Shown here one piece after another: positions 3,813-40,517 of a DNA stretch of 64,000 nt (positions are counted from its first letter, which is position 1; every line of letters starts with the position of its first letter). A program made the translations under genes and the position numbers. Under the pieces are notes generated by a model. The model saw only the letters and a program-made list of their open reading frames with translations. It was not told the origin of the DNA and searched no databases. This DNA is from Octopus sinensis (Eukaryota): positions 60,264,001 to 60,328,000 of the forward strand of contig NC_043009.1 in assembly GCF_006345805.1 (NCBI RefSeq). Direction: 5' to 3'.

Positions 3813-5139
3813 ATATGTGTGCATGTACAAAAAGAGCCAAAGCTTGAATATTAATAACGAGATGTGATGTACGGGAGAATACATTTTTTTAAATGTCCTT
3901 ATGCCATTCTTAAAGTATGTATTATACACCTAGTGCTTTCGTGAGGGGGAAAAATGTAAACAAGAATAGGGCGGCTTCTCTGCCCTGAAGTCATGGCCCA
4001 TAATTATAATCTAAAATTTTCGCGGTTTTCTTTTTTCTCGAAAACGCCGATTCTGTTGGCACTCGCTCCATTACTCACTGTCCTCTAAAGATCGGAAACG
4101 TTAAACTTGCAGAAAATTGTAAAAGTTTTTCACTGAGAAGTAATATATAAAAATTCTTCAATATGCATTCATTCCTTTTTTTTTTACTACTCTTCGTTCA
4201 CGCAGTTCTTTGTGTCATGGCATAATAAGCACACACATACACACACATAGACATAATAGACATACACACATACATGCACGCATACATACATGCATGCGTA
4301 CATGCATACATACATACATACATACATACATACATACATACATACATACATACATGCATGCATACATACATATATACATACATACATACATGCATACATA
4401 CATACATGCATACATACATACATACATACATACATGCATACATACATACATTCATACATACATACATACATGCGTACATACATACGTACATACATACATA
4501 CATACATACATACATACATACATACATACATACATACATGCATGCATGCATACATACATACATACATACATACATACATACATACATACATACATACATA
4601 CATACATACATACATACATACATACATACATACATAGATGCGTACATACCTACCTTATAAATTTACGTTTATAGCATTAATAATTGGAACACTTCGTTTT
4701 GTTCGTAAATATCTAAGTCACAATGTGAAAACGCTAGAGTGTACAGAGAAAGAAATCAACCATCTAACTCGCATATCACAAGGGAAATCTCTTAACAGAA
4801 CAGTAAAAAATATGCATATCAAATAATGTCACGTTTTGAACGTGACATTATTTTTGCTACCTACATTCCAAAGATTTAAGCTTTGTATCTGTTTTAGAAA
4901 CCAACTCCTTCCTTATAGGAAGACTTCAAATTAATTAAAATGGAAAAGAACAAACGTATATACATGCCCACATACATACAGACGAATATACACACAAACG
5001 GATATACACACATACATACCGACAGACAAAATGAATATACGTACATACACCGAAACTATAAATTTTGATTTGTACCTATCATCATAGATGCATTAGGCTG
5101 TGTATCTATAGATTTACACACACACACACACACACGCAC

Positions 5140-5415: not shown

Positions 5416-5749
5416 ATCCAAAAGAACAATATGCTTACATACATACATACATACATACATCTTTTTACTTGTATCAGCCATCTGACAGCCGTCATGTTAG
5501 GATACCGCCTTGAAGTGGGTTTTTTTTTTTTATCGAACAAATCTAGTCTCGGACTTATTTTTTAAGCCTAATACTTATTCTATCGACCGCTTTCTGTCGA
5601 ACCGCTAAGTTACGAAGACGTAAACACAACAACACGAGTTGTCAAGCGGTGGTAGGGGACAAACACAGACACGAAGACACACACGCACGCATCGATATAC
5701 ATACATACATACATACATACATACATACATACATACATACATACATACA

Positions 5750-5797
<48 letters not shown>

Positions 5798-6051
5798 AAC
5801 AAATTATGTTTAATTTATCTTTATATATATATATATATATATATACATTGGGCTTTTTACAGCTTCCGTCAACAAAATACATATACAGGGTTTTGGTTGG
5901 CCCGAGGCTATAGTAGAAGACCCTTTCCCAAAGTGCCACCTAAAACCATGTCGGTGGGAAACAAGCTTCTTACCACACAGACACGAACCATAGCCATCAC
6001 TCGCAAGTGCCGATGATCTGGCAGTATGTACCACATTTTTGCTAATTACTT

Positions 6052-6356: not shown

Positions 6357-6610
6357 CTGTATTCTGTGTAGCCGTGTCCTCCGTACAAGTCATAGAACAG
6401 TTGAGTATTCTGAGGATCTTCTATCAAGCGGCAGAAGGCCCCATGTTGGAAGAAGCAGCTCTTATCGACATGATTTAATGGAAGGATTCCTCCGTTGAGT
6501 ATGTCAAACCCAGTTACCTCTATCTGGGAGCAAGTTGGGGCACTGGATTTGAGGGTCGGGATAAAAGCTGCCATATGACATCTCTTTACGTTTCGCAAAT
6601 ATTCTTTACT
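6357..6610 (-). CDS. Coding exon 3 of the stanniocalcin-like gene (SKEYLRNVKRCHMAAF...GHGYTEY)
   Basis: Acceptor tttttgtatatttgcag|, donor CAG|gtcagt. 254 nt, phase 0 in and phase 2 out, open frame with four Cys. Confidence 0.9.
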
Positions 6611-6652
6611 CTGCAAATATACAAAAACATATGGCAATGGTTAAAAATCTCA

Positions 6653-6742
<90 letters not shown>

Positions 6743-6764
6743 TGATTGATAGATTACTGTCTAC

Positions 6765-6925
6765 CTTTTCATCGAAAAAGTTGATGAATGACTCCACCTG
6801 GCGACACAAGTGATTACCAACATTAAAAGCAAAGTTTTGGTCAGCAGGACAGGTATGCGTTTCATCAAAACACCTATAAAAGTTGCAGTCACCTCTTGCC
6901 ACAAGCATGGCACACCTTTCTGCCC
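6765..6925 (-). CDS. Coding exon 2 of the stanniocalcin-like gene (AERCAMLVARGDCNFYRCFDETHTC...FFDEK)
   Basis: Acceptor ttttattcaacag|, donor AAG|gtagac. 161 nt, phase 1 in and phase 0 out, matching both flanking exons. Five Cys with spacing x8-x4-x6-x14. Confidence 0.9.
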
Positions 6926-9013: not shown

Positions 9014-9192
9014 TCTAGACCTGCTCCATACAACAGGGGGCATTAAAATTGTTATTGATCAAAAACGAGATAAAAGATAGAAAATATAGATGGATATATT
9101 TGTTATAGATTTGTCAATGTACATGCGTGAGTGTGATAGAGAAAGAGAGAAAGAGAGGGGGAGAAAGAGGTGGAAGAGAGAGCGCAGAATTG

Positions 9193-9248
<56 letters not shown>

Positions 9249-9276
9249 TGTGTACAGCGCGCGCGTTTTTACTTAC

Positions 9277-11393
9277 TTAGGTTCGATGTTCTTTGAGCTA
9301 TTTTATTTCGAGCTGGTTGCCGGAAATTACGGGAAGAATCGTCAGTCGAGGGTCGAATGTCTGACCTCTGTCTCTGTGTGAAGGGCTTTACTGTTGACAA
9401 CATCGACTGCTGTACGCGTTCCTGCCACCAAGGAAACGGTCCATGGTTATTCCTATTGAATGAATGACTTGGATTTATTTTCAACCGAGGCCAAACTACC
9501 GGAGCTTTCCAATCGAATTCTTTGATTTGATCGCTGAAGCCACTTTTTAGTTTCGGTAGAGGAACTGTGATGCTCTCTGTTATTCTGCCTTGTTCAGGAA
9601 TTTTCTCGTTCCAGAAACTATTTCTCGATGCCCTCAATTTAGTTTTAGTTTGAGGAGTTTGTTCTGGTCCTGTTCTGTGGTTGCTTCTTGAAGGTACAGA
9701 GTGTAGTTTGGTAAATATTTCAGCTCTGGATATTTTTCGTTCGGGTTCAGGGTTTGATTGTCGTTGCTCAGATTCCGGATAAGGATTTCTTCGTTCAGGC
9801 TCAGGGCGAAGATTTCTCTGCTTATTTTCAGGGATTGAATGTGGGGGCCCAGACTCAGAAAATGGATTCCTTTGTTTAATCTCAGCAAACGGATTCTTTC
9901 GTTCAGGCTCAGAATGCGGATTTCTTCTTTCAGGCTCAGAAAATGGATTCCTTTGCTCAGGATCAGGACGAGAGTTCCTTCTTCAGGCTCAGGACGAGAG
10001 TTCCTTCTTTCAGGCTCAGGATGTGAATTCTTTCGCTTAGGCTCAGAAAATGGATTCCTTTGCTCAGGCTCAGGATGGAGGTTCCTTCTTTCAGGTTCAG
10101 AAAATGGATTATTTTGTTCAGGCTCAGGACGAGAGTTCCTTCTTTCAGGCTCAGGACGAGAGTTCCTTCTTTCAGGTTCAGAAAATGGATTTTTTGTTCA
10201 GGCTCAGGACGAGAGCTCCTTCTTTCAGGTTCAGAAAATGGATTATTTTGTTCAGGCTCAGGACGAGAGTTCCTTCTTTCAGGCTCAGGTTGGGAATTCT
10301 TTAGCCGAGGCTCAGAAAATGGATTTCTTCGCTCAGGCTCAGGACGCAAGATCCTTCTTTCAGGCTCAGAAAATGGATTTTTTCGTTCGGGCTTAGAAAA
10401 TGGATTTCTTCGCGCAGGCTCAGGACGCAAGATCCTTCTTTCAGGCTCATGATATGGATATTTTCGTTGAGGCTCGGAGTGTAGATTTTTTTGTCTTGTC
10501 TCATGATTTGCATATTTTTGCTGTAACTCTGGGATTGCAATTTTTCCTTCAGGTTTCGTGTAAGGACTCCTTAGTTCTAATTTGGGATTTGTATTTCTTT
10601 GCTCAGCTGCAGGTTGTAACCTTCTTCGTTCAGTAGCTGAAGGCTCTGGTTCAGGCTCAGAGTACAAAGAAATCCTTATCGAATTCTCACTCAACCAACT
10701 GTTCTTTCGATTCCTTTTATCTACATCAGATATTGGAAAAGTTCTTTGAATATTATCACCAGGAAATATTCCTGAAGGTTTTACATCAAGTACAACTTTT
10801 TCTCTTTTTGATTCTGTTCTTCCTGAATTTATTTTGTGATCTTTGTAAGGAATTAACCAGCCAGATTCTGAGAATCTTTGAATTGGATTAACACTTGGAT
10901 AAATAATCCTTGTCCACGGTCTAACATTGATTCCGTTGATTTCACCGGCAGTAAATCTATCTCTTTTAGACATCGCCGGATTTGCAGCAGACTTTATCCT
11001 TGGCTGTTGCGTACCACGTTTCACTCTGTTGCGTCTCAGAGACGTCCCGGCCTCTACAATACTGCGAAATGTTTCGATTGGAGGATCGGCGGGAAAAACG
11101 ATTCGCTTCGATTGAGTTTTTCGAAATCTAGAACTGACGTTTGGTGTGGCTGTCTCAACATCACTAATCAATATTTTTCGGAAATAATTTTTCGCGTATT
11201 CTTTATCGCGGTTCGAGCTTTCGCTGCTGAGGTGATCAGACAATGCTGCAATTCCCATGGTATCTGTTGTATGGACATCAATAAATGCAGTCGGCAAAAT
11301 ATGTACGTGAGATTTGGTGGTTAACATGCCTGTAACAGATGTAATGCATGTAGCTGTGGTTAGAAACCATAACACCGAGAACAAAAGATCCAT
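9277..11393 (-). CDS. First coding exon of a secreted stanniocalcin-like protein: signal peptide, pro-region and ~30 x 9-aa EPERR repeats; two 1-nt deletions (~10191, ~9982)
   Basis: ATG at 11393 starts the hydrophobic leader MDLLFSVLWFLTTATCITSVTG. A furin-like RNRVKR site follows. The EPERR repeat frame is continuous if single-base deletions at the T-runs 10190-10195 and 9982-9983 are corrected; both are visible against sister repeat units. The exon ends at a phase-1 donor CTAA|GTAAGT (9277/9276). An upstream acceptor is available at 11434 or 11414. Confidence 0.85.
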
Positions 11394-11895
11394 CCTTGCT
11401 CTCTTCAGCAAAACTGATTTAATTGTAAGTTACCTGTTCAGGTAAATGTAAAGATAGCTAACAGCGTCGATATTATGTTAGACAGTTTCGGTGGTAGGAT
11501 GTAGCTGTGATGGCGGAAGTGGTGGTGGTGATGGTATGGTGACGGTAGTGGGGGGGGGTATGGTGATGGTGGTGCTGCAGCTAATAGTAGAAGTAGTAAT
11601 AGTAGCAGTAGTAGCAGCAGCAGTGTTCGTGGTGGTAGATAAAGTAGACGTGGTGGAAGTGACGGTGGTATTAGAAGTAGTAATATTGGTAGTGGTGGTA
11701 GCATTGGTATTAGTGTTGGCGGAAGTGACGACAATGGTGGGCATGTAGTAGTAGTAGTAGTAGTAGTAGTAATTATGTTGATGCTTTTAGTGATAAAGAT
11801 GGTAGTGGTGATCGTTGTACAGGTTGTGGTGGTGGTGGTGGTGGTGGTGGTGAGAGGAACAGGAACATAATCATAGTGCAACTGCAATGGTAGTG

Positions 11896-11934
<39 letters not shown>

Positions 11935-18759: not shown

Positions 18760-18929
18760 ATGGTGATGGTAGTGATGGTGAGGTTGTGATGGTGATAGTT
18801 GTGAGGGTGCTGGTATTAGTAACGGTGGTCGTCATAGTGATAGTGATCATGATGATGGTGATAATGATAATGATGATGTTGATGATAGTGTCGGCATCGG
18901 TGATAGTGATATGATGAAGATGAAGACGG

Positions 18930-18960
<31 letters not shown>

Positions 18961-18983
18961 GATGAAGACGGTGATGAAGACGG

Positions 18984-19025
<42 letters not shown>

Positions 19026-19620
19026 CGGAGATGATGAGGGCGATGACGATGATGACGATGATGATGATGACGATGATGATGATGACGACGATGATGATGA
19101 TGACGATGATGACGATGATGATGATGATGATGATGACGATGAGGAGGAGGAGGAGGACGATGATGATGATGACGATGATGATCATGATCATGATGATCAT
19201 GATGATGACGGAGATGATGAGGACGATGATGATGATGACAATGATGATGATGACGATGATGATGATGATGACGACGACGATGATGACGATGATGATGATG
19301 ACGACGATAATGATGATGACGATGATGATGACGATGATGATGATGATGATAGTGGTGGTGATGATGATGATGATGATGATAAGGAGGAGGTGGAGTAGGA
19401 GGAAGAGGAGTAGGAGGAGGTGGAGGAGGAGGCGGAGGAGAATGGTGGTGGTGGTGGTGGTGGTGGCAAAAGTGGTATTGGTAATGTTGGGGTTAATGAT
19501 GTTAGTGGTGATTGTGGTAGTAGTACAGCTGTTGGTGGTGGTGGTGGTGGTGGTGGTGGTGGTGGTGGTTTTGGTACTACTGGTCGGACGTAGGGGTAAT
19601 TGCTGTAGCGGAAGTGTTAA
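18760..19620. repeat. Compound trinucleotide tract (GAT/GAC)n-(GAG)n-(GGT)n
   Basis: Direct inspection; similar tracts at 11460-11935, 14200-15050 and 54115-54330. Confidence 0.95.
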
Positions 19621-20344
19621 TGATCACGATTATTATTATGATTCGCAATCGGTAAATGGTATTTTTTTAAAATTCTTCTTTCATTGTCAATATTTGAAAA
19701 TACAATAATTTCTAAATTTTTTTTTTTTTTTAAATAATCTAAATTCAGTTTCCCATTACCATCCAGTTTCAAAATGTGTTCTGTTTTATCTCTATTATTA
19801 ATGATTTCATTATTCCATTATTCATGATTCCTTTATGATTCCATTATCCTATGATTCCTTATAATTCTTCTATGCCTTTATTCCATTCTTCCGTCAATAT
19901 TCTATTGTATTAATTTTTGTTTGTTTCAATATTCTTGTTAGTGCGCTTGTAATGTTATTGGTATAATAAATACGGTTTGAAGAGAAAGGTATTGTTCCTC
20001 TCAAGCACTGTATTGGTGCTGCCGTTGCTACTGCTGCTACTGACGCTGTTGCTGCTGTTGCTGTTGCTGTTGCAGACGCTGCTGCTGCTGCTATTCTATG
20101 CTGCTGTTTCCATTGTTGTTGCTATCGATGCTAAGCAATCTAAACCGCTTCCCAAAAACTCGAACGTTAAATGTATTAACATATTTTGAAGTTTTCGTCA
20201 GGAGCACTTTCACTTTCGAGGCATGGCTATGTGATTAAGAAGCTCACTTTGCAACCGCGTGGTTTCAGGTTCCGTTCCACTGCGCGGCACCTTTGGCAAG
20301 TGTCTTCTATTATTATAGTTCCGGACTGACCAGTGCCTTGTGAG

Positions 20345-24795: not shown

Positions 24796-26362
24796 ATGCC
24801 GAGTGATTCATTCACTTTTTGAAAAAAGTAGAACAGGTGTTGCTTTGAAACATTTTCTGGGAGGTAGGGTTGTTTTTTTTGTTTGCTTGCTTGTTTGTTT
24901 TATAGAATAAGTACTAGGCTTTCAAAGAATAAGTCCCGGGGTCGATTTCCTCGACTAAAGGCGGTGCTCCAGCATGGCCGCTGTCAAATGACTGAAACAA
25001 GTAAAAGAGCAAAAGAGTAAAAATAATATTTTCTGCTATAGGTACGAGACCTGAAATTTTGAGGAGGTGGGGTCTAGTCTATATACATTGACCCCCGGCT
25101 GTGTTCAACTGGTCTTTGTTTCATCGACCCAGAGAGAATAAAAGGTAAAGTTGATTTTGGCGGAATTTCTACTCAGAACATAAAGACGGACGAAAGCTAC
25201 TAAGCATTTTGTCCGGCATGCTAACGATTCTTATTTCTTTACTGCCCACAAGGGGCTATTTCTGGAGCAACGTGAAATGAATTGTTTTGCTCAAGAACAC
25301 AACGCGTCACCCGGTCCAGAAATCGAAACCACAATCTTACGTTCATGAGTCCAACACCCTAACCACTAAGCCACGCGCCTCCACCATATAATGTAAAGTC
25401 GACCTCGGCGGAATTTGAACTCAGAACGTAAAGAGGGATGAAAGACGCCCTGCATGCTAACGATTCTGCCAGCCTACCAATAATAAGAATAACCCTTTCT
25501 TATTTTGGCAGGCCAGCAACTTTGAGGGGTGGGGAAGTCGATTACATCGAACCCAGTGCGTCCCTGGTATTCATTTTATTGACCCCGAAAGGATGAAAGG
25601 CAAAGTCGACCTCGGCGGAATTTGAACTCAGAATATAAAGTCGGGTGAAATGCCGCTAAGCATTTTATCCGGTGTGCTAAGCTCGCCAATAATAATAATT
25701 ATTGTTACATTTGCGTAGGCTTTTTACATGTTATATTATTTACCTAATTTCACAAGAGTCATTCTTCTTTCAAACAAAGGACCAAATACGCCTATCGAAC
25801 TCAACCTGGCCGCTTATGTTGTAATTCTGAAACCCTGGAACTGGGTGTGGGTGGTACCCTGTGGTGAGGTAGCGTTACACGATAGCAACAACCACAAGAC
25901 ACAAAGGATAAATATTTTAAAAAAATTATTTGTGATATTCAATACATTCGTACGTTCCACCACATGGATTACCGGTGGAACATTGCCATCAAAAATACCA
26001 CTAAATGCAATCACAATAGGTCTGACTGTTGTTTACGACAGAAGGCAAAATTTGTGCGTTGTCCAACGGATATGAGTATTTCATTGAAAATCAATGAAAA
26101 AAAATGAGAACATTTATTGATAAATGTTGCTTTACCAAGATTATAAATTTACACTTATACCTATAATAATGAGCTAACTCTAAAGGCGGCGAGCTGGCAG
26201 AATCGTTACCGCGCCGGCAAAGATACATAACAGCATTTCGTTCGTCTTCACGTTCAAATTACGTCAACGTTGTCTTTGCCTTTTGGAATCGCCGGCCTGG
26301 CTTGACAAAATTTCTTACTGGTGCAATAGTTTACATTATAGTATCACCTTAACCCTTCGTGG

Positions 26363-39373: not shown

Positions 39374-40517
39374 CCGACGACGTCAACGACGATGCGGAGG
39401 GGGAGTACGACGCCGACGACGATGCGGAGGGGGAGTACGACACCGACGCCGACGACGGTGCGGAGGGGGAGTACGACGCCGACGACGATGACGATGCGGA
39501 GGGGGAGTACGACGCCGACGACGATGCGGAGGGGGAGTACGACGCCGACGACGATGACGATGCGGAGGGGGAGTACGACGCCGACGACGATGACAATGCG
39601 GAGGGGGAGTACGACACCGACGACGACGACGATGCGGAGGGGGAGTACGACGCCGACGACGATGACGATGCGGAGGGGGAGTACGACGCCGACGACGATG
39701 CGGAGGGGGAGTACGACGCCGACGACGATGACAATGCGGAGGGGGAGTACGACACCGACGACGACGACGATGACGATGCGGAGGGGGAGTACGACGCCGA
39801 CGACGATGCGGAGGGGGAGTACGGCGCCGACGACGATGCGGAGGGGGAGTACGACGCCGACGACGATGACGATGCGGAGGGGGAGTACGACGCCGACGAC
39901 GATGCGGATGGGGAGTACGACGCCGACGATGATGCGGAGGGGGAGTACGACGCCGACGACGATGCGGAGGGGGAGTACGACGCCGACGACGATGCGGAGG
40001 GGGAGTACGGCGCCGACGACGATGCGGAGGGGGAGTACGACGCCGATGACGATGCGGAGGGGGAGTACGACGCCGACGACGATGCGGAGGGGGAGTACGA
40101 CGCCGATTACGATGCGGAGGGGGAGTACGATGCCGACGACGATGCGGAGGGGGGTACGACGCCGACGACGATGCGGAGGGGGAGTACGACGCCGACGACG
40201 ATGCGGAGGGGGAGTACGACGCCGACGACGATGCGGATGGGGAGTACGACGCCGATGACGATGCGGAGGGGGAGTACGACGCCGATGACGATGCGGAGGG
40301 GGAGTACGACGCCGACGACGATGCGGAGAGGGAGTACGATGCCGATTATGATGCGGAGGGGGAGTACGACGCCGACGACGATGACGATGCGGAGGGGGAG
40401 TACGACGCCGACGACGATGACGATGTGGAGGGGGAGTACGACGTCGACGACGATGACGATTCAGAGGGGGAGTATGACGCCGACGACGATGACGATGATG
40501 ATGACCTCAAACTATAA
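39374..40517 (+). repeat. GC-rich minisatellite (~34 units, 24-36 bp) translating as (DDDAEGEYDA)n
   Basis: Unit gacgacgatgcggagggggagtacgacgcc. Length variation is in multiples of 3 except one 1-nt deletion near 40153. The Asp frame ends DDDDLKL* at 40517. Confidence 0.9.

Follow-up and report, generated by a model that had tools for sequence, protein, structure and literature searches.

Multi-copy neuropeptide precursors of the FMRFamide, TRH, and enkephalin type carry near-identical short units bounded by pairs of basic residues. In the apidaecin pre-pro-polyproteins of bees and wasps, 18-residue peptides (range 15–34) are separated by a 10-residue spacer, RR-EAEPEAEP (PMC11549390). Stanniocalcins (STC1, STC2, and their invertebrate homologs) are recognized by a ten-Cys pattern held at 13–37% identity (Roch and Sherwood, 2011; PMC5654410); the homologs are in general predicted to carry a signal peptide, and those of invertebrates have a six-residue hydrophobic insert between C4 and C5 (PMC5654410). 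Stanniocalcin ‘doppelganger’ proteins (SF5), which extend directly from the signal peptide to the C-terminus and are detectable by BLASTp, have been described from octopus posterior salivary glands (Koch et al., 2026; bioRxiv 10.64898/2026.02.02.703354). Here we describe a gene of Octopus sinensis, LOC118765724, whose first coding exon carries a tandem array of nine-codon units and whose following exons encode a stanniocalcin-like domain. It lies on the minus strand of CM016871.1 (GCA_006345805.1, ~60.25–60.28 Mb), and its first three exons fall within the 64,000-nt stretch analyzed here (the window; NC_043009.1, 60,264,001–60,328,000). The gene combines known kinds, either a prepro-hormone whose pro-region bears repeats or a repeat of the polyprotein sort, and is not a new category. 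Our preferred reading, held tentatively and at a little under an even chance, is that the array forms the central part of an unusually long, recently expanded, disordered, and convertase-cleavable pro-region of a secreted invertebrate-type stanniocalcin homolog, with the repeat peptides as by-products.

The register of the repeat was set by anchoring on its GAGCCTGA core, which encodes Glu-Pro-Glu. Read in this way, the array holds 35 nine-codon units, 20 of them central and near-identical, with eight degenerate units on the 5′ side and seven on the 3′ side. Tandem Repeats Finder (TRF) placed a 27-nt array of 22 copies at 9850–10449, with higher-order periods of 54, 81, 134, and 188 nt, and the spacing between anchors was always 27 nt, or a 54-nt pair of 21 + 33 nt, bar two 26-nt steps (10205>10179 and 9990>9964). 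When the window was scanned with the 27-mer, five matches with three or fewer mismatches were obtained against none expected, all of them within the array. A 27-nt coding minisatellite that expanded recently by unequal exchange is the best explanation for this arrangement. The original prediction, made from the sequence alone, had described nine-residue repeats with dibasic sites that degenerate toward both ends of the array. The repeats are real, as is their decay in the flanking units, and all of the variants it had named (NPFSEPERR, NSRPEPERR, ILRPEPERR, NLHPEPEQR, and NPHSEPERK) were found in register; the dibasic site, however, closes just 18 of the 35 units.

Across the 26 well-formed units, position 1 is N in 21, position 2 is P, S, or L, position 3 is variable, and position 4 is P or S, followed by E at position 5 (24 units), P at position 6 (22), and E at position 7 (19), with R (17) or Q (seven) at position 8 and R or K at position 9 (23). 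Conservation is best at E-P-E and positions 2–4 vary most. Taking all 35 units together, the basic pair is present in 13 of the 20 central and five of the 15 flanking units, Gln occupies position 8 in 11 units, and position 9 is basic in 31, including 14 of the 15 old flanking units. The repeat is composed largely of P (19–22%), E (16–22%), and R (17–18%), with a grand average of hydropathy (GRAVY) of −2.0 to −2.6, and in its central piece K+R equals D+E with no pattern of hydrophobic residues. There is no Gly before the pair for amidation, no pyroglutamate start, and no Cys in the units, and removal of the pair leaves seven residues of acidic X-Pro character, with no cargo peptide distinct from a spacer. 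At the repeat sites (P-E-R-R or S-E-P-E-R-R), neither P4 nor P6 is basic and the furin motif R-X-K/R-R is not matched, so furin would not be expected to use them. Enzymes of the PC1/3, PC2, or Kex2 type could, by their established specificity, use RR/RK sites of this sort.

The array resembles the multi-copy neuropeptide precursors in its many near-identical short units, its basic pairs, and its putative secretory precursor. It differs from them in lacking a Gly-basic amidation signal, in being most conserved at E-P-E-R-R and least conserved in the would-be ligand, in having lost half of its pairs, and in the additional presence of a folded hormone-like domain. With the apidaecin polyproteins (PMC11549390) it shares a start that, here, is signal-peptide-like and many tandem units with RR next to an acidic X-Pro run; in contrast to them, the nine-residue octopus unit is wholly spacer-like without a cargo, and a large Cys-rich domain follows. 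Since the unit matches the make-up of the apidaecin spacer and has neither a cargo nor an amidation Gly, we read the heptapeptides as probable spacers.

The repeat exon is the first coding exon of LOC118765724, annotated by NCBI as an ‘uncharacterized protein’ of 216 aa. A protein search with the non-repeat tail of this exon, spliced to the Cys-rich exons, as query gave this protein as the sole match (100% identity), and the NCBI model holds the predicted junction ...TSNL-R-AERC.... The open frame of the tail reaches the donor at 9276, the closing stop codon of the open reading frame (ORF) sitting within the donor consensus, and the Cys-rich exon has at 6925 an acceptor of the same phase, phase 1. 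The placement of the repeat exon and the stanniocalcin-like domain in a single gene, as had been predicted, is borne out by this pairing and by the identical junction in the NCBI model. That model takes a Met within the tail (9403) as its start and lacks a signal peptide, leaving the annotated protein as a ten-Cys secreted-type domain without one; the upstream ORF supplies a signal-like segment. The ATG at 11393 has A at −3 and G at +4, with an in-frame stop 12 codons upstream, and the 22 residues that it opens are hydrophobic. Most likely, the 216-residue annotation covers no more than the C-terminal quarter of a ~880-residue secreted precursor. Exon 4 has a clean polypyrimidine-AG acceptor, and its V-x-x-V-x-L-L-x-x-C motif aligns with STC2.

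A second signal-peptide exon between 9270 and 6925 was also considered and was rejected, the single candidate being microsatellite-derived. Only one AATAAA was found, ~600 nt downstream of the stop past the donor; it lies inside an AT microsatellite and is uninformative as a polyadenylation signal. Microsatellites are dense in the introns and flanks of the gene (4190–4660, 5610–5940, 6630–6750, 9191–9253, and 11745–11934), comprising (TGTATGTA...)n, (TA)n, (CTAT)n, (TG)n, and (GTA)n/(GGT)n types, and are the source of many spurious long ORFs. The long third intron includes a scaffold gap of exactly 100 N at 2451–2550. The coordinates of the features of the gene are collected in the table below.

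Features of LOC118765724 and its repeat exon. Positions are those of the window except for exon 4.
Feature	Position	Strand	Basis
Exon 1, ATG to donor (2117 nt)	11393–9277	−	
Start codon and 22-residue signal-peptide-like segment ending V-T-G	11328–11393	−	Hydropathy and −3/−1 rule by inspection
N-terminal non-repeat region, ~226 residues, no Cys, isoelectric point (pI) ~10, nine adjacent-basic sites	10650–11327	−	
RNRVKR, furin-type R-X-K/R-R, ORF residues 121–126, followed by Gly at P1′	11016–11033	−	Read from sequence
Array, 35 units of 27 nt, consensus N-[PS]-x-[PS]-E-P-E-[RQ]-[RK]	9707–10649	−	TRF and anchoring on core
26-nt unit, first frame slip, missing one base in an A-rich run	10192–10217	−	Anchor spacing
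26-nt unit, second frame slip, missing one base in a short A run	9977–10002	−	Anchor spacing
Non-repeat tail, 145 residues, K/R-rich, in the frame of the last repeat units, holding Met 9403	9277–9706	−	
Splice donor GT of A/GTAAGTAA (A/GTAAGT), phase 1	9275–9276	−	Junction used in LOC118765724 model
Exon 2, first five Cys of the stanniocalcin-like domain	6765–6925	−	LOC118765724 model, tblastn, sequence reading
Exon 3, Cys 6–9 of the stanniocalcin-like domain	6357–6610	−	LOC118765724 model, tblastn, sequence reading
Exon 4, Cys 10 (LFVHFVKLLEHC... segment)	L001 ~26009–26118 (outside the window, ~13 kb past exon 3)		

The Cys spacings of the encoded domain are 8, 4, 6, 14, 23, 15, 24, 7, and 36, compared with 8, 4, 5, 8, 23, 15, 13, 6, and 34 in human STC2, the sequence of which was taken from a PDB alignment. 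Local alignment of the two scored 63, whereas shuffles that preserve composition averaged 31.6 ± 5.4 (z = 5.9) and in none of 2000 cases reached that score. With hhalign against STC1 and STC2, all ten Cys were paired in order (pairwise P 0.044). The C4–C5 spacing exceeds that of STC2 by six (14 vs. 8), and the extra residues include F-A-F-N-V. The domain thus shares with known stanniocalcins the ten-Cys framework, matching spacings, and the +6 insert between C4 and C5, and it is likewise predicted to be helical and to lie C-terminally in a secretory precursor. It departs from them in falling below detection by Pfam PF03298 and phmmer, in having no N-glycosylation site in the C3–C4 loop, and in being preceded by a pro-region of ~680 residues with 35 repeats, whereas in the known proteins, the octopus salivary mimics among them, the domain closely follows the signal peptide. 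Neither exon 2, exon 3, nor the two joined matched Pfam Stanniocalcin (PF03298) even at E ≤ 10, and phmmer of the LOC118765724 protein against the PDB, which holds STC2 chains, gave nothing at E ≤ 10. A single-sequence AlphaFold model of the domain is all-helical but poor, with a predicted local distance difference test (pLDDT) score of 44.7. We accept the domain as stanniocalcin-like, in the sense of a putative distant relationship, because the ten Cys align, the alignment score stands clear of the shuffles, and the C4–C5 insert is of the invertebrate type; on the ten-Cys pattern (PMC5654410) the assignment made in the original prediction is upheld, though below Pfam detection.

The octopus salivary proteins offer a further comparison. 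The SF1 toxin precursors and SF5 mimics (Koch et al., 2026) come from the same animal group and include peptides released at (di)basic sites and a stanniocalcin-like secreted protein. The SF5 mimics, as described, are set apart by the lack of a long pro-region, and LOC118765724 is far more divergent.

The peptide reading of exon 1 runs through three frames, from the ATG at 11393 to ~10200, from 10197 to ~9979, and from 9982 to 9277, because two units (10217–10192 and 10002–9977) are each one base short. Translation from the ATG as assembled exits the repeat reading after 17 units and stops at 9966; 398 codons are open from the ATG and 237 up to the donor at 9276. The exon as assembled is two bases too short for the phase-1 junction of the NCBI model, and hence the two slips alone part the signal-like start from the Cys domain. 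Both occur among the most homogeneous central units, with no other lesion across 2.1 kb. In our judgment, assembly artifacts are a likelier source of the slips than true mutations, since the slips are the sole lesions in 2.1 kb, fall in near-identical units, and occur in an assembly that is PacBio-based according to Li et al. (2020), as cited in PMC11202624. Programmed frameshifting or transcriptional slippage was rejected as an explanation, as the sequence offers no canonical slippery heptamer and its A runs are not long enough. Plus-strand ORFs and an alternative minus-strand frame (IHFLSLKEG...) were likewise rejected, being without a start, a signal, or flanking support and open through repetitiveness. 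The prediction of one secreted precursor therefore stands in so far as there is one gene with a stanniocalcin-like domain and a signal-like start, and fails in that the frame is broken twice as assembled.

Several features of the exon bear on whether the repeat is translated. Of the three readings of the repeat, a single one is in frame with the non-repeat sequence on both sides. Glu5, Glu7, Arg8, and Arg9 are each retained through synonymous codons (GAG/GAA, AGA/CGA, and AGG/AGA), and codon 8 is CGA in nine units, CAA in ten, and TGA in none. CpG decay of CGA yields TGA as readily as CAA. Codon usage at positions 5, 7, 8, and 9 is consistent, if weakly, with a translated frame, the codon-8 evidence being weak because the units are copies of one another. 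The tail is stop-free (chance by composition ~3e-4) and has no adjacent basic pair where 4.5 are expected (P = 0.005), while the upstream regions have 27. This pattern is the one expected if dibasic cleavage matters in the compartment of the protein, and it suggests that the pairs are of consequence there. The pI values of the three pieces of the reading are 10.2, 6.7, and 11.0. A granin-type acidic secretory protein (pI ~4.5–5.5, with scattered dibasic sites) was rejected, the pieces being basic to near-neutral (pI 6.7–11).

Relatives were sought with the three pieces separately (A, 11393–10200; B, 10197–9979; C, 9982–9272). No homolog of piece A, which covers the N-terminal region and repeat, was found by HMMER among 1.84 billion representative proteins; the three matches obtained were all to unrelated proteins with Pro-rich repeats. 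Pfam assigned no family to the three pieces, with one sub-threshold match to DUF1079, and the 476-aa ORF, used as query in a word-indexed search of proteins, returned nothing. When the tail plus Cys exons, or the LOC118765724 protein, were used as queries, only the protein itself was recovered, as a cluster of one; in a collection of 5.8 billion proteins it is a singleton, and that collection holds no annotated O. vulgaris or O. bimaculoides counterpart. Exact look-up of the LOC118765724 protein found the O. sinensis chromosome alone and no transcript contigs. A two-unit DNA pattern gave no matches in metagenome contigs, and no paralog was detected when all pieces were compared by tblastn with the window and L001. 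Nothing relevant was found in literature on the heptapeptides or LOC118765724, nor was there an entry for the gene in the supplements of the O. sinensis gonad transcriptome paper.

In the preferred reading, the signal peptide would be followed by the ~680-residue pro-region with the array in its center. Being P/E/R-rich, charge-balanced, and very hydrophilic, with no hydrophobic core, the repeat is expected to be disordered and exposed. Subtilisin-like convertases would cut in the secretory pathway at RNRVKR, the furin-type site which was correctly noted upstream of the repeat in the original prediction, and at the RR/RK ends of many units. The pro-region would thereby be cut to pieces and the tail and ten-Cys domain released, leaving heptapeptides of the NPFSEPE and NSRPEPE types as by-products comparable to processing spacers and not as selected ligands. 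The repeat anatomy, the gene structure, the signal-like start, and the ten-Cys match are observed; as a working model, we infer that the whole exon is translated, the two slips being taken as assembly errors or as lesions of very recent date, that its product is secreted and cleaved, and that the peptides have no activity of their own.

A number of points weigh against this reading. The frame is broken twice in this assembly, such that no single continuous precursor is encoded, and the signal peptide was judged by eye from hydropathy and the −3/−1 rule. Cleavage is a prediction throughout, and the dibasic depletion of the tail comes from a post-hoc test. About half of the units are without a basic pair, the older flanking units mostly keeping one basic residue. 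The bias of variation toward third positions is weak (0.81, 0.71, and 0.90 bits by codon position), and the units are not independent. No transcript, ortholog, or paralog of the N-terminal region and repeat was found in the searches described above. Elsewhere in the window, at 39377–40491, a 30-nt GC-rich minisatellite (34.6 copies, 12% indels) has several open frames on either strand, one of which spells M-R-R-G-S-T-T-P-T-T with a periodic RR. It has no Pfam match, and its flanks show no signals of a gene. Tandem DNA of this genome can thus yield long ORFs and regularly spaced basic pairs by itself, and neither an open frame nor a regular period is proof of coding.

We consider it unlikely that the gene instead encodes a true multi-peptide precursor, in which the 7-mers freed at RR/RK would themselves be the bioactive products under selection, acting as hormones, pheromones, or salivary/venom peptides, and would be released along with the stanniocalcin-like protein. 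Such a precursor would account for the signal-like start, for the 18 dibasic unit ends, for the persistence of a basic residue at position 9 (31/35, and 14/15 in the old flanking units), and for the depletion of dibasic sites in the tail; Pro at position 2 or 4 together with a penultimate Pro would moreover be expected to shield trimmed peptides from exopeptidases, and octopus salivary glands make both peptide toxins released at (di)basic sites and stanniocalcin mimics (bioRxiv 10.64898/2026.02.02.703354). The units, however, carry no amidation Gly, pyroglutamate start, or Cys, and positions 1–4, which would give specificity, are the least conserved. Gln replaces the first basic residue in 11 units and just five of the 15 old units keep the pair, while the unit is like the spacers of known polyproteins and unlike their cargo. 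The stanniocalcin mimics described from salivary glands have no repeat region, the peptides are absent from searchable literature, and the frame is broken in the assembly where such a precursor calls for one uninterrupted ORF. Distinctly improbable in our judgment is an octopus-specific dual precursor, in which the minisatellite multiplied a dibasic-flanked acidic heptapeptide to ~30 copies before a highly divergent stanniocalcin-like domain and which would deliver exopeptidase-resistant peptides together with a hormone-mimicking protein, possibly from a salivary (venom) or reproductive gland.

The repeat may alternatively be an uncleaved, disordered, charge-balanced spacer or tether, with the protein secreted whole or cut at RNRVKR alone and RR serving as a charge pattern. 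The strong charge balance without a hydrophobic pattern, the dispensability of the dibasic site in about half of the units, and the absence of a P4 or P6 basic residue, which would exclude furin, all suit this account, as does the recent expansion, which suggests that length and not sequence may be what varies. It is nevertheless doubtful, given that convertases of the neuroendocrine type are known to cut well at an RR pair preceding Asn or Ser where the chain is exposed and disordered, and that the avoidance of basic pairs by the adjacent tail (P = 0.005) is hard to explain if the pairs are harmless. There is also a low probability that the array is not translated at all, in which case the slips would be real, the upstream ORF would be a decaying exon or a 5′ untranslated minisatellite, and the gene would make the 216-residue protein or nothing. 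The two slips in the sole available sequence, the internal Met at which the NCBI model begins, the other minisatellite of the window that is likewise open in several frames, and the lack of a protein homolog among the 1.84 billion representatives would fit with this. Set against it are 248 non-repeat codons after a good ATG and 144 before the donor, with no stop or other lesion, and the position of both lesions in sequence where consensus calling from long reads and polishing with short reads are least to be trusted; the product would in addition be a ten-Cys domain without a signal peptide, unlike its homologs in general (PMC5654410).

These findings provide a correction to the gene model of O. 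sinensis and point to a stanniocalcin ancestry that is invisible to Pfam. Stanniocalcin-like proteins have recently been proposed as hormone-mimicking components of cephalopod venom, and a divergent paralog with a giant, putatively cleavable pro-region is a candidate for gland transcriptomes and peptidomes. If the peptides are made and active, this would be a rare case in which a coding minisatellite of recent origin gave rise to a multi-peptide product beside an old hormone fold; if they are not, the array would be an ordinary fast-evolving repeat in a pro-region.

Two other features of the window were noted outside of this gene. A tRNA-Asn (GTT) gene occurs at 48335–48410 on the minus strand (Rfam, 70.5 bits), with which ARAGORN agrees. 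On the plus strand, a 265-aa ORF at 18911–19708 gave sub-threshold Pfam matches to FA_desaturase (20.3 bits) and Choline_transpo (18.4 bits), and is probably hydrophobic low-complexity sequence as opposed to a gene.

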